A DNA stretch of 64,000 nt from Azolla caroliniana. Taxonomy: Eukaryota > Plantae > Polypodiophyta. The DNA is taken from contig JBHGNT010000013.1 of NCBI GenBank assembly GCA_043228905.1, positions 1,178,001 through 1,242,000 of the forward strand, written 5' to 3'. The notes under the pieces were generated by a model. The model ran no database searches, was not told where the DNA came from, and saw only the letters and a list, made by a program, of their open reading frames with translations. The stretch's first letter is position 1, and each line of letters opens with the position of its first letter. The position numbers and the translations under genes are program-made. Positions 8,531 through 46,877 of this stretch are shown piece by piece.

Positions 8531-8534
8531 CAAG

Positions 8535-8551
8535 TGGTGAACCCGACGTGA
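8535..8551 (+). promoter_or_regulatory. G4 primer-binding site complementary to the tRNA-Trp 3' end
   Basis: TGGTGAACCCGACGTGA is the reverse complement of ...TCACGTCGGGTTCACCA, recalled as the 3' end of plant cytosolic tRNA-Trp. Confidence 0.8.
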
Positions 8552-8568
8552 ACACGGGTGGCAAGGAG

Positions 8569-13700: not shown

Positions 13701-14308
13701 TCGTAACCGGTTATATGCCGGCAGAACTCATGACCGGACAAGCACTGGTAATGCCGACGGAAACCGCAATCGCGACATGGACAATGCTACCATGGAAGGA
13801 AGAGATGATCCGGGAAGAACTACTAGCGGTCCAGATACGACAACTAGAGGGAAGACCGGAAGACATAGAGGAAGCAATACGCCGCCAACAAGAAGCGCGA
13901 TTCCGGAATAAAAGCCGGTTCGACACAAAGCACCGACTACGACCGCGGAAGATTGAAGAAGGAGATTGGGTGATTGTCTACGACAGTAGTTTGGATCATC
14001 AACATACAACGATGCAGAAGTTCACAAAAAGGTGGTTCGGACCATACGAGGTTCGGAAAGTTTTCAACAACGGAACTTACCGATTATGCGAGTTAGATGG
14101 AACAATGCTATGAGTGCCTATAGCTGGGAAACGGGTGAAGATTTTCAAGAAGCGGACTGATGAAGAACCCTATGTGATCCTAGACAAGACTGACCAGAAG
14201 GAGCAATTGGAAGAAGATCGCGGTGATGCGGAAAGTGAAGAAAGTGGATTAGAACTCATTGTCGACTTAAGGGGAGAATTGGAGGAAGCTTCGGATGAAG
14301 GTGAATAG
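10766..14308 (+). pseudogene. G4 pol (RT-RH-INT) with several premature stops
   Basis: WFTVPKKNGSLRFIQDL, DLYSGYDQ, LPQG, FLDD; RH IVTVDTS; INT GHRG, WMVDIV, DRGEL, YNPEANGKVER, WFGPY. Confidence 0.88.
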
Positions 14309-17022: not shown

Positions 17023-20000
17023 TGTGAAAGTGTTTTTAGAACCTAAGCCATTGAACATTAGGAGAATATAAAGTATAGATAATTCACCTTTTGAGGATAA
17101 GAACACGAACTAAGACCTTAGGGAAGAAGTCAAAAGTAAAAGTACGAGACCAAGAGAAAAGTAAAAAGAGAAAACGCAGACTATAAAAAACAGTAAAAAT
17201 AGAATGGTCATAACTCCCTCGTTGTTTATCCAAATATCACGTTTAAATATGGATTAGAAAGCTTGTAAAAAGAGCTTTCTATATCTTTTTAAATCGCTTA
17301 ATTTGGATATCGGATGAGGGAGATATGACGATTAGAAGGTCGATGTGTCATAGCTAAAAATAGGGAGATAAAAAGCTTCTAAAAATAGCATGAACGTGGA
17401 TAAGAAGAGGAAGGTTATAAAAGAAGAAGTGATATTAGTGAGGAGGGGGGCTAAGAGTGAAGGCAAAAGAGTGGATGAGGAGTGTTAGGAAGAAGTGTCT
17501 TTGTGGAAGAGGAAGTGTCTTAGAAGAGGAAGGTCTTTGGTTTTAGTTCAATGTGGAGTTTGTCTCCTTTGTATTCTCTTGATGTTGGAATATCAGAACA
17601 TTCTTATTTCTTGCTCGCTTTCTCTATCTTTTTTCTTAGTTTCTTGAGTTATACTCTCTAATCATAATTACCTAGAGCTATATAATATATTATGATTTTC
17701 AACTCCATCTAATCGGTTTGGTCAAGCCCTCATATAGTGTATAACTATCTATTATCTTATACACCCTATCATTTTTGGCGCTCCAGGGAGGGCCGATCCT
17801 TTCCGTATAGGAAGAGAAGTTATCATTTAATTGTGTTACTATATTACATTAACTTAGCTATGCAATTTGCATTTTCGGGTGAAAGAACACAAGATGCTGG
17901 TGCCTTTTTGGCATGCTTTGAGCATCATGCCATATCTATTGGACGCATCACCGACAACGAAAAGTTGCCCTTGTTGGTAGCTACATTCTATGGTCGTGCT
18001 CGAGATTGGTATGACTCTCTTCCGCAAAATGAACAAGGAGAATATCAATTATTGGTGCATCAATTTCGTACAAGATATATTCAATGGAAAAGTGCAACTG
18101 AGGTAAGGGAGGAGCTTTTTCAACTAAAGATGGAATCACCTTTTGGTTTTTTAGAGTATGAACGAAATTTCCAAGAATTGTGGACGACGTGGATTCGTCT
18201 TCGTGGTGGCACCGAAGACGAGTGGTTTAAGATAGAACAATTTAAGGTGGGCCTTGATATGCATTTCCGTTTGGAGGCAAGCTTGAAGGATCCAACGACT
18301 TTTCAAGCTCTTCTCCAAGTTTGTCAAGATTATGATCGACAAGTGAAGATGATGAGTTCCATGGGGGATCCCCAAATGACGGCTTTGGGTGCAAATTTGA
18401 TGCCTCGTGCCAACTTTCAAGCCTCATCTTCAATTGTGCATGGGGGACAAGTGTTTCCAAATGTGTATACCACCACAACAATAAACCCAACAAGTATATC
18501 TCAAGAAGTGGAACAAGTGAAGAGTGAACAAGATACAATGGCGTTGGTGAATCGGCGCTTTGATGAAGTGATGGCCCACTTGCAACAATCCCGAGCAATT
18601 CGCAACACTATTCCCGATGGTGGTGGCTCTAGAGGGCATCACGGTGTAATTTGTTATTCTTGTCAAGAGGAGGGACACATCTCAACAAGATGTCCTCATC
18701 GACAACAAAGAGGCATGGGAAGAGGCATTTATCAAGTGCAAAGGAATGGACAACGACCTAACAACAATGAAGTCGAAGGAAACGTAACACTCCCTATGGC
18801 TCAGGTTCCTACAATTCCTCATAATGTGAATCTTCTTAATTTTATTGATGATAGTGATAATTCTTTTGAAGTAGCTCCTGTGAAAAGGACAAGAGCCTCG
18901 CAAAAGGAGAAAGAAGTTGAAGGAGAATCTAGTGACTCAAGACAAAAGAAGAAGTCTAAGGAGAATGAGAAAGAGGACAAATTGAGAAGGAGACACTCTA
19001 GAAGGAAGATAAAGATGGAGGATATTCCTATGGGAGAAGGTGTAGAATCTTTCAATCGGAAGCATGAATTGATATCGAGTGGACCAAGGATAACATGGCC
19101 GCAACTTCTCCAATTATCTCCCACATTACGAAAGGAGTGGGGGCGACTTGCAAGTATTCGCCAAAGTCGGAAGACTGTGCATTATGTGGGAATCGTGCGA
19201 GTAGAAGATCGAAAGGACATACGACCCACCATCCCCGTCTCCATCAAAGGGTTTCACATCAAAGATGCGTTGGTTGATAGTGGTGCTAGAGTAAGCTTGA
19301 TTTCTGAATTTGTGGTAAACAAAGTGGGAATTCCTATAAGTAGGTCATCTTCGGCAAGAGTGGCTGTAGCCGATGGTGGAGTGGTCCATTGCATTGGCAT
19401 AGTGGAGGATGTTGTCATCAAGTGTTTTGGGGTAAGCATTTCCATGGATTTTCATGTAATACCACTAAAAGGACCGTCATATTCTTTGGTACTAGGACGA
19501 CCATGGATGCAAGAACTCAATGTTGTCCAAGATTGGAGCAAAGGTTTGATGACCATAACGCCATCAAAAGGAGTGAGCATACATTATGATATGCGGCAAC
19601 AAAGACTTATTGAGAAAGAAGAAGATGGAATAACTGAATATGATAGTGGGTCCGCATATGAAAGTGATGAAAGTGAAGATTCCTCGTCAGAATGGGAAAT
19701 GACCACATCATATGCCGTTTTGAAGGAAGAAGATGATGAAGGAGGTTTAATTACTATGGAGCAAAAAGAGAAGATGATTTCTAAAGATCTTAAAGGGCAA
19801 GAGAGGCAACAATTTATTAATTTGATTTCTGAATTTCCTAACCTTTTCATTAGTGATTATGCTCATATTAGGGGTGTAGATGTCATCCAACATCACATAA
19901 ATCTAAAGGAGGGTACAACTCCCGTTGCGCAAAAGTTGCGAAGGCTAGGTCACGTGCAAAAGGAGGCCTTATTAAAGGAAGTCAAAGCTTTGTTGCGTGC

Positions 20001-23000
20001 ACAATTCATTTACCCAGTGGAAGATTCTGAATGGGTTTCGCCCATTGTGGTGGTACCTAAAAAGAATGGAAAATGGAGGGTTTGTGTTGATTACAAACCT
20101 CTAAATGCGGCTACCAAGAGGGATCACTTTCCTCTCCCTTTCCAAGATGAAATATTAGATGAAATTGCGGGTCATGAAATGTACTCTGTTTGTGATGGCT
20201 ATTCAGGTTATTTTCAAATTCGTATTGCGGAAGAGGATCAAAAGAAGACGACATTCATCACTCCATGGGGATGCTTTGCATATCGATGCATGCCCTTTGG
20301 ACTCACAAATGCTGTTTTTACATTTAATCGTCTTGCTATTCATGTATTCCAACCATTCTTTGGAAAGTTTGTTAGAGTCTTTATGGATGACTTTGCAATT
20401 TATAGTAGCAGGAAAGACCATTTGGAAAAGGTTCGCTTGGCATTCAAAAGATTGGAGGAATGCAAAATGCAACTCAACCCAGAGAAGTGTCACATAGGTG
20501 AAAAGGAGGTGGTGATGCTTGGTCATGTGGTGTCTCAAGAAGGAATCAAAGTTGATAGCTCAAAGATTGAAGCAATTCAAAAGATGACAACACCCACGAG
20601 TATCAAAGATTTGGAGGTATTTGTTCAAAAAGTTCGTTACTTTGAACGATTCATTCATATGTTGGCCCAAATTCTCTATCCTTTTCGCATTATTCTTCGC
20701 ACCAACAACTTCTTGTGGACATCTACAACTGAAGAGCAATATGTAAGAATAAAAGAACTATTATGTAATGCTCCTATTCTAAAGCCACCTGATAGAACAT
20801 CTACCTTCTTTCTTTCTCTTAGTGTTGGATCTCATGCTATAGGAGCCATTCTTATGCAACAAGATTCTGAAAATAGGCTTATGCATCCTATATATTTTAT
20901 TAGTAAAGCCATGTCTGATGTAGAGAAAGAATTCTTAGAAGTAGAAAAGTGGATGTTAGCTCTTATATATGCTTGTAAAAAGTTTAGAAGCTTTCTACTA
21001 CCTCATCATTTTGTAATAATCACTAGCATGTCATTACTCCCATATGTACTCCAACATGTGAGCATTTCAGCACGAATTGCTAAATGGGCTCTACTATTGG
21101 CGGAGTTTGATTTTGAAGTCAAATTGGAATCAACTATGCGTGCCGAATTGGCGGATCTTCTCACCTTTAGAGAAACCTTTCATGAAGAAGACTTGGTAAA
21201 GCTACGAAAGGCACTTCCCGAGCCGGATATGGAGGATGCATTCACCTTATTCTTTGATGGGGCATTTCGCAAAGCCACAAACATAGCCGTGGGTGGGATT
21301 ATTCTCAAGGATCCTCAAGGAGACAGAGTAAAAAGTGAAGGTATTACATTAAGTGGTGTGAATTCAAATAATGAAGCGGAGTATGCTACCTTGTGTTATG
21401 GTCTTCGTCTATGTAAAGCTATGAAGATAAAAAGATTAATTCTTAAGGGTGATTCCTTATTGGTAATTAAACAAATTCAAGGCAATTGGAAATGTCAAAG
21501 TGATGGGCTTAGAAATTTTTATAAAGAAGCAATGAGTCTACTAAGGTCTTTTGAAAAGATACAGGTTAAGCATGTGGGGAGATTATACAATAAAGAAGCG
21601 GATGCATTAGCTCAAGCCCAATTAGATAAGATCAAGGAAGGTTTCGTTGGTGTTTTGGAGACGTGCAAAGATGTAGATTCCCTAGAGGAAGTACATAATT
21701 TTCTTAATAAAGGAGAGTTTCCAAATAACCTCAATGCTTTGCAAAGAAAGCGTTTGGTGGCAAAGGCTTCACAATATCATTTGGTGGGTGAAGATTTGTA
21801 CAACAAAGGGAAAGATGGAGTTTTACGAAGAGTTCCTAACAAAAGCGAGATTATAAAGATACTCTTTAAGTTGCATGAAGAAGTTTGTGGTGGGCATTTA
21901 GCCCATGATATAATGATAAGAAAGATTTTACTAATTGGTTTTACATGGCCTACTATCCATAGGGATGTGCATGATTGGTGTAGATCTTGTGATGCATGTC
22001 AAAAAGCGGGAATAAGACATCTACAAAGTGGACCTTTACAACCCATTGTGGTGTTTGCTCCATTCGAGAAATGGGGAATTGATGCAGTAGGACCTCTTCC
22101 GAAAACTCAACATGGTAAAGAGTTTATTTTGGTGGCCATTGACTACATGACAAAGTGGGTGGAAGCTATAGCAACTTCCTCGATTAAAGCCAAAGTGTAG
22201 CCCAATTTGTGTATAAGAATATTTGTACTAGATTTGGAGTTCCCATGGAGATTGTATCCGATCATGGACCCGGTTTTAGGAGTGAAATGTTAGCTTGTCT
22301 ATTAAGCAAGTTGAAGATTAAGCATCGATATTCAACGCCTTATTATCCTCAAGCAAATGGTGCAGTTGAGAAAGTGAATGGGCTTATAGTGAAGAATTTG
22401 ACAAAGTTAGTGCAAGACAAAGTAAGAACATGGGATAGGTATTTGGATGATACTCTTTGGGCTTATAGAGTTTCTTATAAATCCTCCACAGGTTTTACTC
22501 CTTTTTATTTGGTTTATGGAAAAGAAGCGTTACTTCCGATCGAACTTGAGATCAAAAGTAATAGACTAATGGAGGCATCGCATCGCTCAAAAGGAAATGA
22601 TGTGATGAGTCGTTTAGCGAGCAACCATCTACTACAATATTCAAGAGAAGAAGCTGTGGAGCATTACTTAAATCAAGCAATGAAGAGAAAGGAGGCATAT
22701 GACAAAAAACACAAGGGCAACCACATTGAAGAAGGATCATTGGTTCTTAGGTATGATAATAGATATGATTATATTCAAGGACAAAAGCTTGATAATAAGT
22801 GGGAAGGACCCTTTGTGGTTCACAAAAAGTATGACAACGGAAGTTACCAATTGAAAGATGTGGATGGAGCACTTCATTCTTATCGAGTGAACGGATGGCG
22901 CCTTAAAAAGTATGTAACTCGGGGACCTACTTATATTCCCCAAGTTACTAATGATATTGTTGATACGGATGGATGGGAGCAAGAAGTGGGCTTGTTTCCC

Positions 23001-24028
23001 CATACATTATTTTCTTAATAGTCCATATTGTAGACCCATCTTTCTCTCTATTAACAAAGAGGAAGATGGTAATAGTGATTATCTTTTTTATTTGTAGAGA
23101 ATGTGAGGTTTTTCCTACCGATTAGCGGGGGTTTTACTCACATCTTTTTATTTTCTTTTTATTATATCTCTCTCATTGTCTATAGCCAAGAGATTGGCGA
23201 GAGAGCTTTTGTTTGTTAAGTACTGCCAATAAGTGCTTCGCCATAAATGGCTTAGCCTCTAACAAGGGGGAGGGCTAAATGTGAAAGTGTTTTTAGAATC
23301 TAAGCCATTGAACATTAGGAGAATATAAAGTATAGATAATTCACCTTTTGAGGATAAGAACACGAACTAAGACCTTAGGGAAGAAGTCAAAAGTAAAAGT
23401 ACGAGACCAAGAGAAAAGTAAAAAGAGAAAACGCAGACTATAAAAAACAGTAAAAATAGAATGGTCATAACTCCCTCGTTGTTTATCCAAATATCACGTT
23501 TAAATATGGATTAGAAAGCTTGTAAAAAGAGCTTTCTATATCTTTTTAAATCGCTTAATTTGGATATCGGATGAGGGAGATATGACGATTAGAAGGTCGA
23601 TGTGTCATAGCTAAAAATAGGGAGATAAAAAGCTTCTAAAAATAGCATGAACGTGGATAAGAAGAGGAAGGTTATAAAAGAAGAAGTGATATTAGTGAGG
23701 AGGGGGGCTAAGAGTGAAGGCAAAAGAGTGGATGAGGAGTGTTAGGAAGAAGTGTCTTTGTGGAAGAGGAAGTGTCTTAGAAGAGGAAGGTCTTTGGTTT
23801 TAGTTCAATGTGGAGTTTGTCTCCTTTGTATTCTCTTGATGTTGGAATATCAGAACATTCTTATTTCTTGCTCGCTTTCTCTATCTTTTTTCTTAGTTTC
23901 TTGAGTTATACTCTCTAATCATAATTACCTAGAGCTATATAATATATTATGATTTTCAACTCCATCTAATCGGTTTGGTCAAGCCCTCATATAGTGTATA
24001 ACTATCTATTATCTTATACACCCTATCA
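17023..24028 (+). mobile_element. G5: nearly intact, very young Tat-type Ty3/gypsy element with an additional RNase H (TSD GCATG)
   Basis: 749-bp LTRs at 17023-17771 and 23280-24028, one difference seen. GCATG at 17018-17022 and 24029-24033. PBS TGGCGCTCCAGGGAGGG at 17776-17792. PPT AAGGGGGAGGG at 23264-23274. Confidence 0.95.
17860..23018 (+). CDS. G5 gag-pol polyprotein (gag, CCHC, PR, RT, degenerate RH, archaeal-type RH, INT) with one frameshift at ~22198
   Basis: ICYSCQEEGHISTRCP; ALVDSGA; WVSPIVVVPKKNGKWRVCVDY..FMDDF; FFDGA..NNEAEY..GDS..NKEADALA; H..H..C..C, WGIDAVGP, YYPQANGAVE, WEGPF. One inserted G restores KAKVVAQFVYKNIC. Confidence 0.9.
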
Positions 24029-24462
24029 GCATGGTACAAAAGTTATTCATGCATAGACACTCGAGTTAAAAAGAAAAAGATGAGGTAGAAAGCTAATCAT
24101 GCACATGCAGTGTGCATGAAAACTAAAGATAGAAAAAGCATGATGCTTGCATGTGATAAACTGAGACTCTTCCAACACTATATAAGGAAGAGAGAAAGAT
24201 GTATAGAGGTTGTTGATTATTTTACTAGGGTTGATTAATATAATATAATCGTGGGATCCACGAATTTGCTAACTATTTTTCTCTCTTAATTTGATTACTC
24301 ACTAATACACTATACTCGTGGGATTCACGAGTTTTTCATATCCTTCTTTCTTACAATATATTTCATATTCTTAATTGCCTTAGAATTTTCATTCCTCCTA
24401 GTCCAAAACCTCAGCGGTTCCCACCCAATTCACGCAACGATCCGGAGCCGTAAGGCACGACA

Positions 24463-27400
24463 GCGGAACTCATGCTCAATGTAGTTTCTAGTTTCTTAAA
24501 AACTTGAGTCCAAAAGTCACTAGTAAACTTGGAATCTTGATTACTAACAATATCCATCGGTAATCCATAAAAACAAAATAACTCATCAACAAATTGATAA
24601 GCCAATTGTTGAGCGGTTACTGTGATTTTGGTAGGAATAAATCTAGTCAATTTTGTTAGTCTGTCAACGACAACCCAAATGGCATTATGACCCCTCTGTG
24701 TACGAGGTAAACTAATAATAAAATCCATTGAGATACTTTCCCATTTGTTGTTGGGAATATCTAAGGGATGTAAAAAACCAGCAGCTTTAAGTCGTTCCGA
24801 CTTATTAATCTGACATTGGAAGCATTGAGTTACGTATTTATGCATGTCAGAGTGCATCTTAGGCCAGGAAAAAGTACTCGAGATGAGATCGAGTGTGCGT
24901 TGTATTCGAAGATGACCAGCAGATGGTGCATCATGACATTCATGAAGAATTTTGTGTTTTACGTTTGGTAAATGTGGAACACAGACCTTTCCACTATGGT
25001 AGAGCAAATCGTTTGTAATGTGAAAGGACGCCTTCGAGGGTTGGGTGCTAGTATCAACATCTAAACCAGATTCGGCTTTCGTCCAATATTTCGAAAAATA
25101 ACTGTCATCAAGGTATTTCCCTCGAAGGTGATCTAAAAGATCATATTTTATTTCCGTGAAGCTAAGCATGTTAACTTCATTAATGTGACTAAGAGCATCC
25201 GCAACAGTGTTCATAGAACCCTTGCGATACCATATGGAAAAATCAAAATCTTGCATAAGGTCAACCTAATGGCCTTTACGACCAACAAGATTTGGCTGGT
25301 CACAAAAATACTTCAATGATTAATGGTCTATTGTAACCAGAAATTTATTTTCATCGAGATAGTGCCTCCATGTTTTAAGTGCATGTATTACCGCAAACAA
25401 CTCTTTCTCTTGAACTGAATACCGAGATTGAGCAACATCAAGCTTCTTACTTTCAAAAGCAATAGGGTGACCGTCCTAATAAAGAACGACACCAATAGCA
25501 TAATCACTGGCATCAGTTTCGATTGAGAAAGGCTTAGAAGGGTTCGATAATAGAAGAGTGGGAGCTAGATACACATGCTCTTTGAGTGTCTCAAATTATT
25601 TGTCAAGTTGTTCATTCCATGCAATTGGTTTGACAGACTTACGTGGATGACCTTTTAAAAGGTCAGTTAATGGCGTAGTCAATTTGGAATAGTTACGAAT
25701 TGATTTTCGTAAAAATCCAACAAACCCTAAGAATGATCACAGTTCACGAATATTACAAGGAATGGGCCAAAGTTTAACCTTTTCAATACGAGAAGGTTCA
25801 ATTTCAACACCATTTTCCGTAATTAAATGACCTAGGTACACAATAGATTTTGGGAAAAAATCAAAATTTGAATGTTTTGCATAGAAAGAGTTGTCACGCA
25901 ACTTTTGCAAAACAAATCGAACATGTTGAACATGATCTTGCAAGGTACGGATATATATCAAAATATCATCCAAGAATACGACAACAAAATCACCGAGTTG
26001 ATCTCGGAAAACGTCGTTCATCGCTTGTTGGAATGTGGCTGGAGCATTAGTCAACCCGAAAGGCATGACTAAAAACTCATAATGGCCATAGTGAGTACGA
26101 AAAACGATTTTAGGAATATCATCCTCGGCAATGTGAATATGATGATAACCTGTTCGTAAGTCAATTTTCGTAAAATATTGAGCTCCATGCAAACGATCAA
26201 TCAAATCATCAGCACGAGGTAACAGATATGCATTTTTAATTGTCATTTTATTCAAACGGCGATAATTAATACCCATCTGCCATGAACCTTCCTTCTTCTT
26301 TACTAATAGAACTGGCGCACCCAAGGTGATTTACTATACCTAATGTGGCCCATACTCAAGTATTCCTTAAGTTGTTTAGCGATCTCATCCTCTTCTAATC
26401 GACTAAGTCGGTAAGGTGGAATGCTCACAGGAGCAGCACCAGGGATGAGTTCAATTTGATGGTCTACATTACGTTTTGGTGGTAAAGTAAGCGGCAATTC
26501 GTTAGGAAAAACGTCTTGAAAATCATCTAAAATAGAGTCAAGTAATCGTTGTTCATAATGTGGTAATGGTGTGGCGTCAATATTAAAATAATAAAATTAA
26601 AGCGCAGGATCAATTACACACGAATAAATTAATGAACTTGAATACTCACCTAAAGATTTAGAAGACACAAGTGAACAAGAAGGGAGTTTGGAACATTGAA
26701 TAAAATGTTTACAATTATTAAGTTCAAATGTGATTGAGTGATTAACCCAATCAATGGACAAAGAAGGGTTTTTATTAAAAAACCAAGGGTATCCTAAAAT
26801 GATATCTGTGGATTGTAGTTTCATAACATGAAAGTCAAGCTTCTCCAAATAGGTATCTATCTGAATTGGCAGTTGACAAACAATGCCACTGATGTATTGA
26901 ACACTTCCATTTTCCATGTGAACTTGATAGATATGTTCACTTGCGTTTATGTGGAGTTCCATTTGCTGCACAATGTGATCATAAAGAAAATTGTGAGAAC
27001 TACTGGAATCAAACAAGAAATGTGCTTGTGTTCCATTGATATACCCGACTGCTCGGAGTAAATCATTAGGTCCAAGTAAATGTGAAGGAAAAGTGCATTC
27101 ACATGAACTTAAGTGGTTGGTATGAACTTCAAAAACATCAAAAGACTCACCTGTGTGACTCGTAGATTTGTCTTGAGGAGGGGTGTTCATTGACTTCCTC
27201 TCAAGATGACGACAGGTATCCTTTGTGTGGCCCCGCTTCTTGCAATATGCACAGAAGAGGTTAGGTTTCTTGGGGTTGCGGTCAAGAGTATCATTGGATT
27301 GCTTACGTTTCCCAATGAACTTGACATTTGGAGTTTTGACGAACTTAGGTTTATTGTGGTCTTTCTTGGAAGTCCTATGGTACCGAAGTACAATGTTGGC

Positions 27401-28100
27401 GAATTCTTCAAAAGTTGTGGGGTCCTTGTCATGGACAATCCAATGGTAATCCCCATTAGGAATACCATTAAAAAAGCAAGCAACAAACCATTTCTCACCC
27501 GTAAGTCCCGATTTTTGGATTTGGGTCCGAGCATGATGCACATAATCCTCAAGAGAGGTAAATGGCTTACTCGACAACGTGAGCAAGTGTTGCGCTTGTT
27601 CAGTTTGAGAAGGTGGCTACAAAAACTGTTTCTTAAAAACATCAACGAAACCTTCCCAAGTTGTGGGTAAGTTCTTTGCAGTCCTTAGGCTGCGCCACCA
27701 AGCAGTAGCTCGGCCACCTAACTCACGACCGACGTAACCAATTTTTACAGCATCGGGCTTGGGGTGGACCTCAAAGTGAGACTCCCAACGACCAAGCCAA
27801 GTGCTAATGGCCTCCTCGGTTCTTTCTTTCTTATCTCCCTTGAATGGTGTTACTACGAAAGAAGGCTCACCTTATTTCTTGGACTCAATAGTCAATTCTT
27901 GGAATTTCATTTCAATGCCATATTGGCCTGGCTCATTTCGGCCAATCAAGGTAGTAGGGAGCAATTGCTCAATAGTGATCTCAACTTGTGTGCGAGATGC
28001 GGATTGGAGTTGAGAGAACTCGGTCGGAGAGATTGCTCCAACAACGTTCAAAACTTGTTCCATGATGCAAACTGTGGGTATGCAATATAAATAAGGAGGT
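24463..28100 (-). pseudogene. G3 gag-pol (disrupted)
   Basis: CCHC FCAYCKKRGHTKDTC, protease HFLFDSSSSHNF, RT FTKIDLRTGYH..YGHYEFLVMPFGL..VFLDDILI, INT ECHD..GH..CFQCQ..WESISMDF. Confidence 0.88.
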
Positions 28101-32995: not shown

Positions 32996-35981
32996 ACTAT
33001 AAATAATTATTTGATGAGGCGATCCTTCCAAGAAATGTCGCCATTGCTCGAAAGAGTCAACCACAACTAGTAACTCCTTGTCATGCACCTCATAGTTTAT
33101 CTCCGTAGCAGTAAATTTTCTCGAGTGAAATGTGGATGGGACTACCCGTCCTTGACTAGTTGGGATAGGATACTCCCCAATGCAAAGTCTGACGCATCTG
33201 CTTCAATGGTAAATGGCTTTTCAGGATCAATATGTGCTAACATTGGAGCTGGTGTGAATGCCTCTTTGAGCTGAGTAAAGGTTGTGTCCGCTTCAATAGT
33301 CCAAACAAACGATTGATTCTTCTTGGTGAGTTGGGTGAGAGGCAACACGATCTTTGAATAATTTTGTATGAATTTGCAATAGAAGTTAGCAAATCCGAGG
33401 AAACATTGGACGTCTCGAACAGAACGTGGGGGTTGTCATTCCAATATTGTTGACTTTTGCTAGATCCATGAAGATACCCTTAGATGAAATAGTATAACCC
33501 AAGAATTCGACTTGTTCGCTATCAAAACTGCACTTCTCAAGTTTGGCATACAGACCATACTTTCTTAAGCATTCAAGTACTTTCCGAACATGTATATCAT
33601 GCTCCTCCTGTGTTTTAGAGTAAATCAACAGATAATCTAAATAGATTATGAGAAAGATATCCAGAAAATCCCAGGAAATGTCATTTGCCATATGTTGGAA
33701 AACTGCGAGTGCATTTGTGAGCCCGAAAGGCATGACTGTATACTCGAAATGACCATACCGAGTGCAAAATGTTGTTTTCCACTCATCTCCCAGTTGAATG
33801 CAAACAAGATTATATGCACCCCTTAAACCAATCTTTGTAAAATTTTTTGCCCCACCAATGCGCTCTAAAAGACAGGAGATTAAAGGAAGAGCATACCTAT
33901 TTCTTATGGTGACTTTATTTAATCCCCGATAGTCCATGACCAAATGAAGCGATCCATCCTTTTTCTTCACAAAAAATATAGGAGCACCGAATGAAGATTT
34001 TGAATGTCGAATAAACCCATGTGCAAGATTCTCCTCAATGTATTCTCGAAGAACCTCAAGCTCAGTTGGTGATAGATTGTAGATCTGACCCCATGGTGGC
34101 TCTTTTCCTGGTTGGAGGTCAATGGGACAATCGTATGGCCGATACTTTGGAAGTACACTAGCTTTGACTTTGTCGAAAACATCAACATATTCTTGGATGT
34201 ATGGATTCCCTTGAGTCACACTAGAAGGTGTCACTGATATTCCAAATAAGAAAAGTTCCTCCTTTCCTCCCACTTGGAACAATTGTTGCAATGTGATGGT
34301 TGAGATTTGGTGAAAGGAAGATGGTGCACTGGTAGAACTATATTCTTTAAGGGAATACTCTTGGGTTCGATCCTTAGCAATGATGTTTTCTATAGAAGGG
34401 CACCAAATTTCTTGCCTCCTCCAATCTATTCGTGGGTTATGTAGCTCGAACCATGGCAAACCAAGGACAATTGGATGCTCGAGGTATATTAAAGGAAACT
34501 ACACATCCTAAATCACCTAAGAGTATGTGTATTGGCTCTAACTCTTCGAATATCTTCCCGGAAGCTATGGGACGTCCATCAATCACTACTACGGAAACTA
34601 GGCAAGGATATTTGATGTTTTTGGGCAAAATCTCTATTCATGAAACAAGAATTGGCTCCGGTATCTAAAAGGGCTTGGACGTGAAGTTGGCAACTTTGTG
34701 TCCTCACTTGTAGTTAGGTTGAGAAGACTCTACTAACATGCTTGGATGAAATGGAACCTACACTAGGTTGTATAGAGCTAGGGTTGTCCAACCAAATGGC
34801 TCCTATTTTGGCTAGACTTATTCGTTTGACTCCTCTTCTAATTGGATTAGGACTTCAAACTTATTGGACAAGGGTGGATTATTCATAATATTAGAATCAC
34901 TAAGTGCTTCTAAAATGTTGGACTCATTTTTATTGTCATAGTGAATTTGATTTACCTGACGTCTCAGCCTACGAGAGCAATGAATGGCTATATGTCCTGG
35001 ACCTCTGCAATATAAGCATAGATGGTTTGCTCAGCGTCGTTGCTTCTCTTTGTCCGACAATGGTCTTCGATGTTGGGTCATATCGATCTCTATGGGTATC
35101 GGCCTATCCATTGGGGTCGGGCTACATGTTTGTCTTGGGGTTGGAGCAGGGCTATATGTTTGCCTTGGAGACGATTGCGTTGTTACTGATGCATAAGTTG
35201 GCATGTATCTTGATCTTGTTATTTGTTGTTGTCGCTCACATTGACGCTCAAAAAGACGATTATCACACCGTATTGCTCGACTAATAGCGTATGTAAGTGA
35301 GTTTGGATCCTTAGGGAAGGTAAGAAGTAAGTCCTTCACATCACTACGAAAACCGGAATGAAATTGCTCCATTAGGGATTGTTCATCCCAAGGAATATCG
35401 CTTGCGATGAGACGAAAATTGGTTGCATATGTTGAGGTTGGTTGATCACCTTGACATAGTGTACGAATCTTGTTGATTGTCGTTCTTGCCCCATCTGTAT
35501 CTCCGAAGCAAGCCTTAAATTCTTTGACAAACTCCTCGAAATTATGCAATAGAGGAGAATTTGTCTCTAGTAATGGAGCAAACCATGACAATGCTATGCC
35601 AGTCAATAAGGTGCCCACTAACCCGACTCGTGATGCAACTGTCGGATAACGCGTGGGATGCATTTGGATTACCAACAGCACTTGATTCAAGAAACCTTGG
35701 AAATGCGCCCTTGAACCATCGAATTTAGCTGGGAGACTGATTTTGGGCTTGTTAATACTTCCTTGACCTTCGACACTTTGTTGTTGTAAAATTACAATTG
35801 TCAATTCTAATTGTTGCACCCATCGTGTAAACTCTTCTTCTTGTTGTTGCTTCTCAACAATAACCTTTTGTAGATCCCTAAGAAGACGTTGATTCTCTAA
35901 TTCAAGAGATGCGAACTTGGATTTAATATTCTCTATTTCTGCGACAAGGGTGAGATATTCTTCCGAGTTGATGGCAACCAT
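32996..35981 (-). pseudogene. G1 gag, protease, RT and RNase H (disrupted)
   Basis: Gag [85 protein letters not shown]. Confidence 0.85.
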
Positions 35982-37545: not shown

Positions 37546-40006
37546 CAATGAAATGCCTCTTGTAAAGCATATGAATAAAAAAATTATTGTCCAAAAGAGG
37601 AATATTCCCACCTTAGCAATTAATGGAAAAAGAGCTACATATGTTTCATATTCAATCTCATTTAAACACCTCATGCACACACTTGTGTATCTCATTTAGT
37701 TTATAATTGTTGGAAGATAAGGGGAATAATGCTCCATGCCATCTACATGTATGATTTGGGAAGATTATCCATCACAAGTTTACCATAATGATGAGAGGAG
37801 AAAATACCCAAAAGAAGGCATTGGCATTACATGAAATATCTAAGCAAATCTAGACCTCCCAACAAGAGGATTGTGATCTCTTAAAGTATATAACCATAAT
37901 AGTATTTGTTGTAAAGTGCATGCTTTGCAACTAAAGTTAGCATGTATAAATCTTCAATGAGGAGTTTTCAGCTACTATCCTTATTCATAGTCTTAGTTTC
38001 ATATAATGCACAATACTCATTCGCCTGTAAAATGATGGCTTTACAACTTTGACTTTGACAAATTTTCCAAGATATGAAGAATGAAAAGGACTGCATTTCC
38101 TTATACGGACAAATGAATTATTATGTGCTTGTTAACATTAGAACTTGTCTTTTTCACACTCCGTCTTTTTGATAAAAATGATAGGCCAATGTTGTGAATC
38201 CATTTTCTCGCTCCTATCGTTCCACAACAAATGAAAAAGACAGGTCTTGCAAAGCCGAGTTTGGAGTAGTTTGAGAGCGTGCATCATTTCAAACTCAAAC
38301 CATAAATAATTTTTACCTGAATTCCCAACACCAAACATATTTCTTGAGAATTAAGCCTATAGCAGACATGTGCATCCTTTCAAACTTGAAGAATAAATAG
38401 TTTTTTCTAATTTCACAACACCGAACATATTGCTCAAGAATTAAGCCTACAACAAACACGTTTCAAAGAACAAGATTGTCGAGAACATGATCAAATTTAT
38501 ACTTTAAGCCTTATTATCCATTAAACCCATTAAACTATAGTACATGGGGACGTCAAAGTATCTTATATGATGTATACAGACATTGATTTTACATCGTGCG
38601 TTAGCATGTAACGTATTATTTGTTATATTTAAATTATATTATTTTATTCATTGTGTATACTTCAAGGCCATTAATTTAGTAACAAACTTAGAATAATAGT
38701 TTGTGTGTGCACTCATAGTGCCACAACCTAGAGAACACTAATATTAGTTTATTTGAATAAATTTTTGAAGAAGCCAACCTATATTTCCTCAAAAGAGAAG
38801 GAAAACCCCACCTACAACTTTGTGGTGGCGAGTGTTTTATGTTGTGATTGTACGATTGAGAATGAATTTGATGGTCATGACGCGCAATGTGAGAATCGTG
38901 ATGCCTCACTCATCCTCTCAAGGTTAGTTTTACCTACTACCATAGAATAAACAAACATGCTTTTTTCACCCAGTGCAAAATGGAGGGAGGAGAACACACA
39001 ACATATGCTTTCATATCACTTAAGCATACGTAATAGACCCCCTTTTTTTTAATGGAAGAGAACACAATGCATATGCTTTCATATTGCATGAGCATCTATA
39101 ATAGACCACTTCCGAGGATAGGCTCTATTCACATATTTTACTTGGTTTTGAAATGTATGATGAGCACAATCATACACATCTCATTGATTGTATATAATAA
39201 TAATTCAGGATTGACTAGATATTACAACCATTGATATTGTGTGTGGTGCAAAATGCTCCCCCCCATCCTCCCCCCCCCCCCCCCAAAAAAAAAAACCTTT
39301 AGGTAGATAACCTTCATTATGTAGTTGCAAAAAGTTTGAATTGACCACAACATCACGATGTTATCGAGATATTCTTCAAAACGTTGTCATTGTCTCTTAT
39401 CGAAAACTATCAACAGTTGAACATCCAGAAACAAATGTGTGAGAGTATAGAGAATATCAATAGAATATTGGTAAAAGCTACACAAGCCATGTGCCCTTCA
39501 CAAAATAAGAGAGTTAGCAAATCGGAAGGAAGAGAAAAAAACGAGCGATCGAGGGCGAAGGTAGTAAGTAAGAGAAAAAGGTAAATGAGTGATGGAAAGT
39601 TAAAATAAGAAAGAGTAGCATAAAGGAGAGGTCGAGAGTTAAAAAGGAAAAGTGGAATTTGTCTTTGCTTGTTGCAAAGCAAGTTGTTGAAGCATCCAAG
39701 GGGGTCAGTGTCTCTTCTCAAGAGATGACATTGGTACTCTATCATTATTTAAGAAAGAGCGAGGGCGGCAAAAAAGCTTGGCCCATGTGCAAATCACTCC
39801 AAAGTGCATGTAGATAAGAGGACCGAGCGTGTGGATGTACCGAAACTTTGTGCAAAAGGAACGAATGAAGAATATCATCGTGTCAATAATATCGTAAATC
39901 ATATGCCATGGCGAGAGAACCCCATCATGCAATCACTCATTACCAGTAGTAAAAGCATGTAGAGATGGATTGCAAGGGTCTACCTGAACGACGACGGATC
40001 GCCGCA

Positions 40007-40144
40007 TATATACATACATACATACATACATACATACATACATACATACATACATACGTCATACATACGTCATACATACATACATAGATAGATTATCATA
40101 GAAAGAAGATGAAGATGAAGATTTATTTTGGTCTTCATACATGC

Positions 40145-40562: not shown

Positions 40563-41035
40563 GTATGTTTCTGTATCTGTTCAGAGAGAGAGAGAGAGAG
40601 AGAGAGGTTTATTTCGCTGTATAGGGTATCACACACACTCTCTCTATATCTTTCTGAGAAAGAGAGACAGAGAGAAATCGAGGGAAGAAGAATCCCCTCG
40701 AGTGAGATGATATACATTTACACACACACACACACGCACGCACGCACGCACGCATATATATATGCACAGAGCTTTTTTCCCATCGTTAGTGGAGCTAGAA
40801 AGGATAGATCTGGTGTTTTCCTCTCGTTTTGGTGTTGTTTCGGAGCTTTTTTTCCATCGTTAAGTGGAGGTAGAAAGGATATTACTTGTTATGGACTGAA
40901 ATGTGCCTTCAATGGTCGAAGATAGATAGATAGATAGATAGATAGATATAGATCTGTGTGGAAGGCTTTGTTTGTTCAACGTTTTCCATTTTAAAAAATC
41001 TTACTCTGCTGTGTATGTATTGTGTATTGTGACAG
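40563..41035 (+). other. Predicted leader intron 1
   Basis: Donor GTATGT at 40563 (alternative GT at 40559); acceptor TGACAG ending at 41035. Microsatellite-rich interior. Leader introns are typical of plant SAMDC genes. Confidence 0.6.
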
Positions 41036-41068
41036 AAAGAAGAAAGGGAGATTGAACAAAACATTCGA

Positions 41069-41077
41069 ATGTTATAA
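41069..41077 (+). promoter_or_regulatory. SAMDC 'tiny' uORF (ATG TTA TAA) overlapping the small uORF start by one nt (TAATG)
   Basis: Same geometry as the known plant SAMDC tiny/small uORF pair. Confidence 0.9.
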
Positions 41078-41865
41078 TGGAGACTAGAGGAGGCGTGAAG
41101 TCAAGTTCACACCAATATGAGAATCCCCTCGGCTATACAATCGAAGATGTCCGGCCAAATGGTGGGATCGAGAAGTTCCGCAGTGCTGCATACTGCCACG
41201 TATGTCTCTTCTTAATCATCATGAAAATTCTCGTCTAATGCCGTTTCTTCTTGAGTGATTTTTATATTTCAAAAGAATTCTTACATCTTACTGCACATTT
41301 TTCTACACGAGGAATGTAAATTTCAATCTATAATTGAATTATCAAAATACTTGGGATCTATAGATATCTATATATCTGTTAGATATGTGTGACCTCTTGA
41401 TGTTTTACATTGTCTCCTACTGTTATATCACAAAGCATCTATCTGTATTCCGAAGTGGACGATGTTATTATATACATGATAATGCATGAACTTTTGATGT
41501 TTTACATGGTCTCCTACTATATATCACAAGGCATAGGTCTCTCACTGTTATATAACAAGGCCATCTGTATTCTGCAGAGGATGGTGTTTATCATATATAT
41601 GATAATGCATGAAATTTTGAGGAAATAGCTAGCATCTTTCTGCTGTTTCACAGAAAATATTGTCGGTTTTAAACACATGGACATTCATTCACACATATCT
41701 GTGTCCCTGTCTGTATTGTCTCGCAAAGAATGTTGGATGTTCTTATTCTATAGTCTTACTAGAAATTTGTTCTTGTCAAGAAAACTCTTTTTATGTTTTC
41801 ATATCAAGCATTCACTAATGTTGTTCGTCTTTTGCTCTTTTCAGTGTGCCAGGAAGCCCTCCTGA
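41077..41865 (+). CDS. SAMDC conserved-peptide 'small' uORF, 47 aa, exons 41077-41199 and 41845-41865
   Basis: METRGGVKSSSHQYENPLGYTIEDVRPNGGIEKFRSAAYCH/CARKPS*, matching the plant SAMDC uORF consensus YEAPLGYSIEDVRPNGGIKKFRSAAYSNCARKPS. GT..AG intron 41200-41844 in phase 0. Confidence 0.95.
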
Positions 41866-41891
41866 TGACTGTGCCAGGGAGAGCAATTTAA
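41865..41891 (+). promoter_or_regulatory. Third uORF (MTVPGRAI*) overlapping the small-uORF stop (TGATG)
   Basis: TCC TGA TGA CTG: ATG at 41865-41867, TAA at 41889-41891. No other ATG before 42000. Confidence 0.55.
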
Positions 41892-41999
41892 CAAGAACTT
41901 CCTAGTTTTTGTTAGGATAGGTAGTTAATACATATTTGGGATTCGGTGTTCGTAGGCTCTTCTGTTACTTCATTTCTTGTCTTTTGTCGAGGCGGCGTG

Positions 42000-44423
42000 A
42001 TGGGCATTCTTTTCTACCCAGAGGAGGGTGAAGTATTGCAGCATGATGATGTCCATTTAGATTCTAGCGAGCATTTTGAGGGTGTGGAGAAAAGGTTACA
42101 AGTTGAATTTCTCCATTCTGATTGTTATGGTGATTCCTCCAAGGGCTTGCGAAGCCTATCCAGGCATGATATTGAACAAGTTCTTTCGGCAGCTAGATGC
42201 AGCATTGTGAAGAAACTAAGCAACGATGAGGTTGATACTTATGTGTTGTCGGAATCTAGCCTTTTTGTGTATAGTCACAAGGTCATCATCAAAACATGCG
42301 GAACTACGAAACTTCTCAATGCAGTTCCAGTGTTGCTTGACCTGGCTTCTAGGCTGTCTTTGAGAGTGAAGGGATGTAAGTACAGCCGAGCTATGTATGA
42401 TCTTCCTGAAAAACAGCCGTTTCCTCACGGAAGCTTCTGTGATGAAGTCGAGTTCTTGAATGGTTTCTTTGGGAATCTCGGAACGGGCAGCAAAGCGTAC
42501 GTGTTGAATGATCCGACTGGACCTCAGAGTTGGCACATCTACTCTTCATATGTGACTTTTGATGATGGTTTAGATGGTGAAGCTGTAATCTATACATTGG
42601 AGATGTGCATGACACAATTGAGCCGAAAGAAAGCGGCCAAGTTCTTCAAAGCCATTTGTAATTCAGCTTCAGAGATGACTAGGGAATCAGGCATTGGCAA
42701 ATTGCTTCCAAATTCGGAAATTTGTGACTTTGCCTTTGACCCGTGTGGATACTCCATGAACTCAGTGGAGAGGGGAGCTGTGTCAACTATCCATGTAACC
42801 CCTGAGAAAAAGCATAGTTATGCAAGCTTTGAAACAATGGGTTATGGCCCAGAGGATGTGGATCTTTCTGCTCTAGTTAGTGATGCCCTGGGTTGCTTTC
42901 AGCCAGGGGTTTTCTCTGTTGCAGTTCATGTTAGCGGTTTATCAGATGCCAATCTGGTGAGTGGTAACTCGTGGCTCTCGCCTGTTTCCATTTATGGTTA
43001 TACTCATACTTCTACTAGTGTGGAAGTGCTGCCTGGAGATGGGGCCATCATGTTCCAGACCTACAGGGAGGATTCATCATCGTTACTCTCCAAAGCTCTG
43101 ACATTCTCCCTAAAAAGTGAAATTCCTGTGAAAGGATCAGATAGCGGCAACTTGTGGAGTGTGGACAAGAGCCTTGATATTGCTCTCTCTGAGGTAGAAC
43201 AGGTTTTGTGTGCTATTAATCCAGTGTTTATTGGTAAGACCCACAAGGATGTCGATGAAACGATGAAGAATTGGATTATCAAGAGCAAAACAGAGGAGGC
43301 CTTTTATGTGATGGATGTAGGTGTAGTTTTGCAGCTATGGAAGACATGGAAAGTATTGATGCCACGTGTTCATCCATTTTATGCTGTAAAGTGCAACTCG
43401 GATAGAGTGCTATTGTCTCTATTATCGGCTCTTGGAGCTGGTTTTGATGTTGCAAGCAAAGCAGAACTTGACCTTGTTCAAGGCCTGGGTGTTGGGTCTG
43501 ATAGGATCATTTTTGCAAATCCTTGCAAGTTACCATCTCATGTTGTTCATGCAGCCAGTCAAGGGGTTCATCTTACAACCTTTGACTCTGAATCAGAATT
43601 ACGCAAGCTTCATAAACTGAATGCTAAGGCAGAGGTAGTTCTTCGCATTCGAGTCTGTGATCCTGGTGCAAGGTGTCCTCTTGGTGTGAAGTATGGTGCT
43701 GAGATGGATGAGTGTGAGGATTTGCTTACAGTGGCCAGAACACTTGGTCTGCAAGTAGTTGGTGTTGCTTTTCATGTGGGCAGTGGTGCCTCGGATGCTG
43801 CATCTTTTGCATCGGGAATCTACCAAGCAAGACAGGTATTTGATATGGCAAAAAGACTTGGCATAACATCCCTAAGGCTATTAGATGTTGGAGGGGGGTT
43901 TGTTTCCGATGGTGGTCATGGTGTTTCTTTCGAGGCTGCAGCTAAGTCCATCAATGAAGCTCTAGATATGTATTTCCCATGTAGTATGGGGGTATCTGTG
44001 ATAGCTGAGCCAGGTCGTTTCTTTGCCGAAGAAACATATACACTCGCAACACAAGTGTTTGGTAGCCGTGTGCGTAGAGGGAATGGAGGAGAGCTAGTTG
44101 AGTATTGGGTCAATGATGGGATTTATGGGTCCATGAATTGTTTGCTGTATGATCATGCAATATTATCGGTAAGGCCATTATGCATTTCATCAAACTCAGA
44201 TATCGGCAGGAATGAGGATGACAATGGAAAATGCCGGTCTACAATATTTGGTCCCACATGCGATGGTCTTGATACTATTATGGAAGGTGTCTCATTACCC
44301 CGCATGAGTTGTGGCGATTGGCTTGTTTTCTCAAGGATGGGGGCCTATACCAAAGCAGCTGCTTCCACTTTCAATGGTTTCGATATCAGTGGGATGAAAA
44401 CAGTTTGTGTTTGTTCCATATAA
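42000..44423 (+). CDS. SAMDC-ODC: Bifunctional S-adenosylmethionine decarboxylase proenzyme / ornithine decarboxylase fusion (807 aa, intronless)
   Basis: SAMDC aa ~1-357: FEGVEKRL, YVLSE|SSLFV self-cleavage site, KTCGTT, TLEMCM, FDPCGYSMN, TIHVTPE, SYASFE. ODC aa ~430-807: FYVMD, PFYAVKCN (PLP Lys464), GFDVAS, IIFANPCK, FHVGSG, LDVGGGF, AEPGRFF, NDGIYGSMNC, LYDHA, GPTCDGLD, MGAYT, FNGF. The ATG at 42000 has a strong context (GTGATGG); the ORF-track GTG at 41946 is unlikely to be the start. Confidence 0.95.
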   Translation: MGILFYPEEGEVLQHDDVHLDSSEHFEGVEKRLQVEFLHSDCYGDSSKGLRSLSRHDIEQVLSAARCSIVKKLSNDEVDTYVLSESSLFVYSHKVIIKTCGTTKLLNAVPVLLDLASRLSLRVKGCKYSRAMYDLPEKQPFPHGSFCDEVEFLNGFFGNLGTGSKAYVLNDPTGPQSWHIYSSYVTFDDGLDGEAVIYTLEMCMTQLSRKKAAKFFKAICNSASEMTRESGIGKLLPNSEICDFAFDPCGYSMNSVERGAVSTIHVTPEKKHSYASFETMGYGPEDVDLSALVSDALGCFQPGVFSVAVHVSGLSDANLVSGNSWLSPVSIYGYTHTSTSVEVLPGDGAIMFQTYREDSSSLLSKALTFSLKSEIPVKGSDSGNLWSVDKSLDIALSEVEQVLCAINPVFIGKTHKDVDETMKNWIIKSKTEEAFYVMDVGVVLQLWKTWKVLMPRVHPFYAVKCNSDRVLLSLLSALGAGFDVASKAELDLVQGLGVGSDRIIFANPCKLPSHVVHAASQGVHLTTFDSESELRKLHKLNAKAEVVLRIRVCDPGARCPLGVKYGAEMDECEDLLTVARTLGLQVVGVAFHVGSGASDAASFASGIYQARQVFDMAKRLGITSLRLLDVGGGFVSDGGHGVSFEAAAKSINEALDMYFPCSMGVSVIAEPGRFFAEETYTLATQVFGSRVRRGNGGELVEYWVNDGIYGSMNCLLYDHAILSVRPLCISSNSDIGRNEDDNGKCRSTIFGPTCDGLDTIMEGVSLPRMSCGDWLVFSRMGAYTKAAASTFNGFDISGMKTVCVCSI

Positions 44424-46877
44424 GTAGAGTTTATATTATTTTCATACTAAGATTTGCCGTCGCTGCCGCCTCTTAATGATCATAGTAGTTGGTATATCTT
44501 TATATAATTCAGCATATTATCATATTTCTAGCCTTTTGCAAACCGTAACCTAGCTTTAATGATAGTACTTTCCTTGCTTTTGAAGATCAAGTCATTATAT
44601 ATTTTTGTGTTCTTGGTATTAAGTTTATACAACTAAATACTGTGTTTGGGTACATCATAATGTTTTGATTATGTGATCATGGTGGAAAATTGAGTCAAAG
44701 ACTGGTAATTAGAAAGGATAAATAAACATGGTGGAAAAAAGGTTTCTTCAATGTTGACTGTAACTGAAAAACTCGATCTGTGGCCGTAACAATACACGGG
44801 GTACTCCAGCCCAATTTATTGCCTAAAAGTAAGTGCTTATCTAAAATTGGAGCCATAGCATTAGCTAAAATTGGCGCCATAGCAGTTGCTGACTTTTTTC
44901 ACATATGAGTAGGTTCACTTAAATGGATTCCTATTTATTGTTGTATGAAAGCTAATGATAGAACGCATTCATGTTGGTGACCTCTTAAGACATGAGGAAA
45001 TTTCATCACCATTGGATGAGATGGAAGAACCAATTTGGGGCATTGCTTTCCTTCCAAGCCTATGGAATGAGCATTCCCCTACAAATTACAATGGCTTTTA
45101 TCATAACAAAATTGTAGATTTAGTTTAGTTGGCCTTGTCAACAACTTAATTGTTCATTCAAGAGTATCATCCAGTTGGAGGAATTATCTTCCACACGTGT
45201 CTTATCTCAAGAGGTGGAGGAAATTTTTTATTCGACATTTTGACCATAACCATGTCTTAGGATGTTTTTACTTTCCGACCAACATTTTCTAATTAATTGA
45301 AGACTTTTCCATTATGGACCAAAGCTTCTTGCACCATTTTGTATCCAGGTAATGGGGAACAACCTTGCCTTCTTCAAACGTTTTTTGTGGCGAAGATTCT
45401 AGTGAAAAAAGAACGTTGTCTTTTGATAAGTCTTACCGAAGTTCTTTAGCCTTAAATGTTAATGGATTTTGATCCCCCAATACAAATAAGTGTTACCAAA
45501 GTTCTTTAGACTTAAAAGTTCATGGATTATTATAATTATCTACTAGAAAAAAATTTGGATACCTACCAAACAAATACTGTTATCATGGAAGAATACTATA
45601 TATATAGTGGGAGTAGAACCTAGTAGGGTGATTATAGTTGGAAACACGTGATTCAAGGTTGAGAAAGTAACGAAGTGTTTGAGATTTGTTGGGTATTTAA
45701 GAAATATAGCCAAGTTTTCCAAACTACATGAATAACCTCATGGTGCACAATTCACAATGACAATAATTATTTTGGTTGTTTTTAAATCTTACGGGTAAAT
45801 ATCCAAAATGTGCGGTATTTTTATATTGATCTCCACAAGATAAAGCAAATGTTTACTGGAATGGCTTCCATATGAGCAACAAATCGAAAAATTTGTGCAT
45901 GGCTAAGATGCAAAGTGTGATTGCTCTTACTCAAGCTAATTATTGAAGTGGTGCTGAATATTTTTGGAGGTGACTTTTTTTGACATGTAGGTATGTTCAA
46001 ATCTTCTTCTTTATGGCCATACCAATGACATACCACAGCAAAGTAAGGAACCTCCTTGTTGCAAAGTTAAAACACGTGTTGAAACTAGCTTTTCAAAGGA
46101 AGGACCGGATTATATGTGTAATAATTGGACTTATCCATCAATGCCTATATTTGAAATTGTTTACGTGCTTGCTTAAGATGGTTTTATTGTATATGTGATG
46201 GTTTTGCGTCAACAAAGAAGCAATGTTCTTATTATTATTAGTTGAGTTATACACCATGATAAGGTTTACATACATGTAATTTTGCAAGTGAGCAAAAATA
46301 TGTAATTCAATGGTCTTTCACAACCGCATAAGAGCATCAAATGAATGAACAAGGTTTGAAAACGAGATACATGGTAAAGATTATTGGAAATGATTGTGCC
46401 TTTTTCTCCTTTAGTAACTTGGTGGTTCCTAACTATTTCAAAAGTGTCAATTGCAAACTTGGAGGTGTCAGATGGTTGGAAACATGCTTTGTTAGAATTT
46501 TGGAGTCATGATATTGATCCGCCATCACACAATCATCAATTCCAATATGTTCAAGCCATTTTCAATAGCATTTTCTACCAAAGGGAGGTAAAAGATCAAC
46601 AAATGTTCACTTTTGTAAAAAAACAATTTCCAAAAAAGGAGCCTAAACCCTAAACCCTAAACCCAAAATTTCTCATTAGTTAGGAGACATTTTTACAGAA
46701 AGACTATACAAGGTGGCTTATATATAATCGGGGAATCACCCCTGACCGAGTTCAAGAATATGAGACTAAGTACATATCCTCTCATACTTTCTACTTAATG
46801 TAACCGGTGATGAATGTCACTATTTTATAGCTCTAGGTTCACTTTTGTAGATTTATTTATTTTACATAATGTGATAC

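Follow-up and report, generated by a model that had tools for sequence, protein, structure and literature searches.

Animals and fungi control ODC through antizyme; to our knowledge plants do not have it, and for this reason little is understood of how they match ODC activity to their polyamine content. The locus described here gives this question a concrete form. Within a stretch of 64,000 nucleotides from the fern Azolla caroliniana (GenBank assembly GCA_043228905.1, contig JBHGNT010000013.1, positions 1,178,001 to 1,242,000; hereafter the window), the pair of uORFs known from angiosperm SAMDC mRNAs lies directly upstream of a reading frame that begins as SAMDC and runs on into ODC. The original prediction took this to be a fusion by which ODC had been placed under the polyamine sensor of SAMDC. 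In the present study, we asked whether the leader is genuine, whether it forms one gene with the fusion, how old the arrangement may be, and what it would mean for the control of ODC.

The leader was borne out in both of its predicted members, a tiny uORF ATG-TTA-TAA and, overlapping it, a spliced conserved-peptide uORF of 47 aa (Table 1). The stop codon of the tiny uORF and the start codon of the small uORF share a single A, at 41077 (TAATG), and a phase-0 intron with GT..AG borders splits the small uORF six codons ahead of its stop; the length of 47 aa is the arithmetic sum of 41 and 6 codons, each exon having been analysed separately. Exon 1 alone matched the Pfam family PF08132 (AdoMetDC_leader) with 72.9 bits and E = 1.9e-20 (cut-off 25), far beyond chance, and exon 2 brings the penultimate proline that is the hallmark of the family. 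With C at -3 and T at +4, the AUG of the tiny uORF has a weak context; the contexts are strong for the small uORF (A at -3, G at +4) and for the main ORF at 42000 (G at -3, G at +4). All 8 of 8 independent land-plant leaders examined have a 2-codon ORF that shares exactly one base with the small uORF, and by our own estimate such an arrangement would be expected by chance at about 1 in 500 loci. By every sequence criterion applied, the leader belongs to the SAMDC dual-uORF family, and we have hardly any doubt about the structural identification of leader and gene.

At its 5' side, an intron acceptor (..gtgacag) near 41035/41036 may mark the start of a leader segment; an acceptor-like ..tttgcag also lies directly 5' of the tiny uORF in Marchantia. 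At the other end of the leader, the ATG of an 8-codon ORF overlaps the small-uORF stop (UGAUG); this ATG is present in the close relative L001 and absent in other ferns, Marchantia and Selaginella, and the ORF is non-conserved.

Table 1. Positions of the leader, the fusion gene and neighbouring elements in the window, with identity to the close relative L001
Feature	Position	Strand	Identity to L001	Remarks
Leader upstream of tiny uORF	41036..41068	+	rises to 97% from ~41037	
Tiny uORF, 2 codons	41069..41077	+		ATG-TTA-TAA; direct reading
Small uORF, exon 1, 41 codons	41077..41199	+	95.4%	PF08132 match; donor CAC/gtatgt at its end
Phase-0 intron within small uORF, 645 nt	41200..41844	+	84.9% (430 gapped columns)	gtatgt...cttttcag; pyrimidine-rich acceptor
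Small uORF, exon 2	41845..41865	+	100%	CARKPS + TGA
8-codon ORF	41865-41891			
Spacer, small-uORF stop to main ATG, 134 nt	41866..41999	+	89.5%	reinitiation distance
Main ORF, 807 aa, intronless	42000..44423	+	94%	SAMDC, linker, ODC
SAMDC proenzyme domain (aa 24-355)	42069-43064	+		Pfam SAM_decarbox, E = 1.6e-100
ODC domain (aa 435-781)	43302-44342	+		Pfam Orn_Arg_deC_N + Orn_DAP_Arg_deC
3' UTR, probable	44424..44726	+		ends near AATAAA at 44721; delimited by L001 identity profile
Ty3/gypsy-type ORFs and RT fragments	8500-14113	+		
Ty3/gypsy-type ORFs and RT fragments	17737-23018	+		
Ty3/gypsy-type ORFs and RT fragments	24411-27586	-		
Ty3/gypsy-type ORFs and RT fragments	33386-35981	-		
Microsatellites 5' of leader	40000-40090, 40720-40760, 40925-40950			(TACA/ATAC)n, (CA)n(GCAC)n, (AGAT)n
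ORF pair, 221 aa + 160 aa	50702-51868			probably a retroelement fragment; zf-RVT domain
ORF pair, 221 aa + 160 aa	56556-57722			probably a duplicate of the preceding pair

The main ORF carries both enzymes in full. Its N-terminal part aligned with potato SAMDC (1mhm, 4.5e-78) and with the human proenzyme (1msv) and, compared with these two, retains the self-cleavage motif ..LSESS.. together with KTCGTT, PCGYSMN and TIHVTPE. The C-terminal part aligned with mouse ODC (7odc, 1e-106) and with human ODC, and keeps, relative to 7odc, the PLP lysine in PFYAVKCN, the motifs HVGSG, GGGF and EPGR, and the catalytic cysteine in GPTCDGLD. Because the catalytic motifs of SAMDC and ODC are conserved, both halves look catalytically competent. 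In domain order the fusion resembles the AdoMetDC/ODC of Plasmodium falciparum, which consists of an N-terminal SAMDC, a linker and a C-terminal ODC and unites in one polypeptide both decarboxylases that limit the rate of the pathway; we know of no conserved-peptide uORF sensor on the Plasmodium gene.

Support for reading leader and main ORF as one gene came from related sequences. A genomic contig of a relative with 93% identity (L001/L002) matches the window in its tiny uORF, in both small-uORF exons and the place of the intron between them, and in the spacer and fusion ORF, and the exon blocks stand out sharply in a sliding identity profile; downstream, identity stays at 80-97% up to about 44690 and then falls abruptly. 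Contigs from three other fern lineages (L003; L007-L009, with the 5'-truncated L010 of the same fern; L011) combine in one molecule the tiny uORF, a 47-aa small uORF that runs without a break, a spacer of 160-230 nt and the fusion ORF, and we take these Logan contigs to be mRNAs from their size and their missing intron. The weak-then-strong succession of AUG contexts is found in fern transcripts too, and in L007-L009 the starts of the tiny and the small uORF are the sole AUGs of the leader. Position 1 of L010 is exactly the first base of uORF exon 2, which suggests a splice junction at this place, because an assembly graph is expected to branch there. In the window, the uORF pair lies upstream of the SAM_decarbox ORF, and the orthologous fern contigs join the uORFs to the ORF; from these relatives and from the conservation of the locus, we infer splicing of the leader and co-transcription of uORFs and ORF in the window gene.

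The dN/dS comparison across orthologues, which had been proposed as a check on the uORF, pointed to selection on the peptide itself. Among ferns, dN of exon 1 was 0.08-0.24 and dS either exceeded 1.6 or could not be computed (saturated), with dN/dS of ~0.03-0.12 in comparable pairs; one close fern pair gave 0.35 on few changes, and the window and L001 differ by 4 synonymous and 2 non-synonymous changes. This pattern of substitution indicates that the small-uORF peptide is under purifying selection, which implies that the uORF is translated. Such selection would be compatible with a repression of the main ORF that depends on polyamines and on the peptide sequence, without being proof of it.

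The arrangement is by no means peculiar to Azolla. A word-based protein search returned >100 full-length proteins with SAM_decarbox, Orn_Arg_deC_N and Orn_DAP_Arg_deC, found in the ferns Adiantum and Ceratopteris (two paralogues), in the liverworts Marchantia, Riccia and Calypogeia, in the lycophyte Selaginella, in the streptophyte algae Mesotaenium, Spirogloea, Closterium, Chlorokybus and Mesostigma, and in many chlorophytes. As a side observation, four of the algal fusions (P0038, P0042, P0057 and P0120) are named 'Mitochondrial 2-oxoadipate and 2-oxoglutarate transporter', which looks like a propagated mis-annotation.

The leader accompanies the fusion over much of this range. The 12-nt string of the tiny uORF, ATGTTATAATGG, is identical in the window, L001, the fern transcripts L007-L009 and Marchantia (L004), where exon 1 of the small uORF ends in ..AAYSN/gtaagt and exon 2 encodes CVRKPS-stop. 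In Selaginella, the tiny uORF reads ATG-TTT-TAA and exon 2 encodes FVRKPS-stop; here, as in Marchantia, the intron position is that of the window. The fusion ORF begins 140-200 nt downstream of the uORFs in the L001, Marchantia and Selaginella loci, and a tiny uORF overlapping by one base is common to all land-plant fusion leaders examined. On the level of gene models only, the fusion ORF of Adiantum is immediately preceded by an annotated, spliced gene with PF08132, and the fusion models of Chlorokybus and Closterium start with the uORF peptide. The fusion transcript of Tetraselmis (L016) carries at 304-528 a 74-codon uORF with DVRPWGG and the ending ..LRKPS-stop, 132 nt before the fusion AUG, and no tiny uORF was found in this transcript; this fits the published absence of the tiny uORF from prasinophytes (PMC2811004). 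Scores against PF08132 were 93-99 bits in the other ferns, 88.8 in Marchantia, 62.4 in Selaginella, 52.3 in Closterium and 37.7 in Chlorokybus, and 17.9 bits in Tetraselmis, the last being under the 25-bit cut-off. The ending ..(R/K)KPS-TGA of the small uORF recurred in all relatives examined, and an alignment of fern, liverwort, lycophyte, algal and angiosperm leaders contained 9 invariant columns. An upstream ORF in Micractinium with a faint ..ELRPW..KF.. had no Pfam match and was not counted as evidence.

These distributions place the tie between small uORF and fusion at least as far back as the streptophyte ancestor, and probably in the green-plant ancestor, as judged from the sequences compared. 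The original prediction found no support in this respect: ODC does not appear to have been newly placed under the sensor in this lineage, since the arrangement is shared with ferns, Selaginella, Marchantia, Chlorokybus and Closterium and, more weakly, with Tetraselmis, and stand-alone SAMDCs nest within the fusion clade.

This last point came from a maximum-likelihood tree of the SAMDC domain from 22 fusions and 18 stand-alone proteins, the latter from lineages other than algae, rooted on the chlorophyte fusions and built from green sequences only. The tree follows the species tree, with the fusions as its backbone: all land-plant SAMDCs form one clade (100/97), a liverwort stand-alone SAMDC is nested among liverwort fusions (100/98), and a euphyllophyte clade (98/97) unites fern fusions, fern stand-alone proteins and the SAMDCs of seed plants. 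Monophyly of the stand-alone SAMDCs was rejected (AU p = 1.9e-6), for a group that had been chosen with the tree already at hand. Gene conversion was considered as a source of this topology and ruled out, as paralogues are not grouped by species. Stand-alone SAMDCs were found in Adiantum, Selaginella, Diphasiastrum, Calypogeia and mosses, and the sequencing project that yielded the fern fusion mRNA L007-L010 also yielded a stand-alone SAMDC mRNA (L013-L015, 376 aa). The latter resembles the window gene in its leader, with a tiny uORF ATG-TCG-TGA and a 49-aa small uORF ending in ..RKPS-stop (L013 127-284; also in L014 and L015), and differs from it in that its main ORF encodes SAMDC only and its uORF peptide has diverged further from the family profile (PF08132 score 54.8 bits, versus 93-99 for the fern fusion leaders). 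Stand-alone SAMDCs thus appear, on the simplest reading of the tree, to have arisen by repeated loss of the ODC domain with the leader kept, the direction (ODC loss rather than repeated fusion) resting on the rooting with chlorophyte fusions.

The ODC domain tells a different part of the story. In a tree built in quick mode, the stand-alone ODCs of Sphagnum, Lycopodiaceae and seed plants formed a clade of their own (SH-aLRT 97), separate from the clade of fusion ODCs of Zygnematophyceae, liverworts, Selaginella and ferns (SH-aLRT 97). Seed-plant ODC would therefore be an old paralogue and not a recent split product, and its origin by fission of the fusion was rejected on the same ground. The two distributions look complementary, with the fusion in liverworts, Selaginella and ferns, and stand-alone ODC in Sphagnum, Lycopodiaceae and seed plants; the best 120 matches included no named stand-alone ODC of a fern, which hints at its absence there but does not prove it. 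The 'stand-alone' ODC models of Closterium hardly differ from its fusion and probably represent incomplete gene models.

Compared with the best-known relative, the angiosperm SAMDC leader (PF08132; Ivanov, Atkins and Michael 2010, PMC2811004), the window leader shares the tiny uORF of 2-3 codons, the one-nucleotide overlap, the weak tiny AUG followed by a strong small AUG, and the penultimate-proline peptide, and its small uORF has 47 codons, as in the fern fusion leaders, versus the 48-55 described for land plants. The intron donor lies right after ..AAYSN in the gene models of Linum and Vitis, and ..AAYCH of the window aligns to the same column. As in angiosperms, the main ORF has no intron and opens with SAMDC; unlike theirs, it runs on into a complete ODC domain, for a bifunctional product.

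What this leader would do to the fusion can be argued from the angiosperm model. In angiosperm SAMDC mRNAs, when polyamines are low, ribosomes recognise the tiny uORF, terminate there and start again at the main ORF; when polyamines are high, they pass over the weak tiny AUG and translate the small uORF, whose peptide represses downstream translation in a sequence-dependent manner (PMC2811004). By analogy, ribosomes scanning the fusion mRNA at low polyamine levels would use the tiny uORF and, after termination, reinitiate at the fusion ORF, whereas at high levels they would skip it and translate the small uORF, and the small-uORF peptide would block initiation downstream. SAMDC and ODC output would drop together, because the main ORF encodes both enzymes; with the uORFs on the fusion mRNA, any effect of theirs on main-ORF translation would also reach the ODC domain. 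The reading that we hold to be quite probable is that the window gene encodes a bifunctional SAMDC-ODC with the canonical plant SAMDC dual-uORF polyamine sensor, an ancestral arrangement in which both outputs would fall together; polyamine-responsive co-regulation of SAMDC and ODC, taken as a claim of its own, seems to us reasonably likely. In non-seed plants, such a device would provide a translational polyamine feedback on ODC in the place that antizyme holds in animals and fungi. The further claim that one switch governs both entry steps of spermidine synthesis was overstated. Land plants also make putrescine via arginine decarboxylase, outside the reach of the uORF switch, and because of this route and of the second, stand-alone SAMDC of ferns, the switch would not be the sole control of either step.

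It is possible, if unlikely, that the uORF pair is a real brake which in ferns acts constitutively or senses a signal other than polyamines, leaving ODC without polyamine feedback. The literature searched contained no experiment on any fusion leader, and the fern peptides depart from the angiosperm consensus at several positions; against this, the features on which the angiosperm model relies are kept, namely the invariant core ..Y..E.R...F..AAY.., the ..KPS-stop and the weak-then-strong AUG contexts, and the fusion leaders score higher than the fern stand-alone SAMDC leader on a Pfam profile derived from angiosperms. We give considerably less credence to the idea that leader and fusion ORF end up on separate mature mRNAs in Azolla, through a downstream start or intron retention, so that the uORFs would be a bypassed relic. 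Alternative downstream transcription starts that evade uORFs are reported for other uORF genes of Arabidopsis (PMC6064979), but three other fern lineages join uORFs and fusion ORF in single contigs, the spacer and the uORF exons (95-100%) are conserved against L001, and the strong purifying selection at the peptide level requires that the small uORF be translated.

The surroundings of the gene raise yet another explanation: amid retrotransposons, the locus might be a copy in decay, a chimera or an artefact of assembly, with the true polyamine genes elsewhere. Ty3/gypsy-type ORFs (gag, protease, RT, RNase H and integrase) and RT fragments do lie on both flanks, and other ferns have a stand-alone SAMDC. 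Such retroelement surroundings are expected for a large fern genome, and the explanation is effectively refuted by the uninterrupted 807-aa ORF with all its catalytic motifs, by the 93% identity to an independent assembly with its contrast between exons and intron, and by an architecture common to more than a hundred full-length homologues. The original prediction had called this the functional SAMDC locus and not debris. Its second half stands, on the intact ORF, the motifs and the exons at 94-100% versus the intron at 85% against L001; its first half needs softening, as the locus is not necessarily the only one for SAMDC, given that ferns express a separate SAMDC with a uORF pair of its own. 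Farther downstream, two ORF pairs of identical lengths lie 5854 nt apart and are probably a duplicated retroelement fragment, and just 5' of the leader there are several microsatellites, which caused the sub-threshold matches to miRNA families that were all an Rfam search around the leader returned.

The sensor that we favour, a dual-uORF leader acting on both decarboxylases, may be compared with other devices for polyamine control. It would share with the antizyme +1 frameshift and with the uCC elements of ODC and antizyme-inhibitor mRNAs a polyamine feedback on ODC through translational sensing in an upstream frame (PMC2811004). It differs from antizyme, which acts post-translationally on the ODC protein, and from the uCCs, which have non-AUG starts and an independent origin (PMC2811004); unlike in both, ODC would here be controlled only through sharing an mRNA with SAMDC.

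The literature searched, PMC12803844, PMC6356823 and PMC11020214 included, yielded no description of a SAMDC-ODC fusion from plants or algae, nor of the uORF leader of such a fusion; gene models of the fusion are already public, some with PF08132 merged in. The leader is mechanistically unsurprising, evolutionarily informative and apparently unreported. We venture, as a tentative proposal which might well prove wrong, that the uORF system arose not for SAMDC alone but in an early ancestor of the green plants, on an mRNA that encoded SAMDC and ODC together, that it still sets the output of both decarboxylases in many green algae, liverworts, Selaginella and ferns as the plant counterpart of antizyme, and that the stand-alone SAMDCs, among them the seed-plant genes that all experiments have used, are derivatives which repeatedly lost ODC and kept the leader. 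The idea is testable in the transformable Marchantia, whose tiny uORF is identical to that of the window, and in Ceratopteris. If true, a uORF sensor on the SAMDC-ODC mRNA would be a simple answer to the question of how ODC is controlled in non-seed plants and green algae, and the evolutionary reading of one of the best-studied conserved-peptide uORFs of plants would change.
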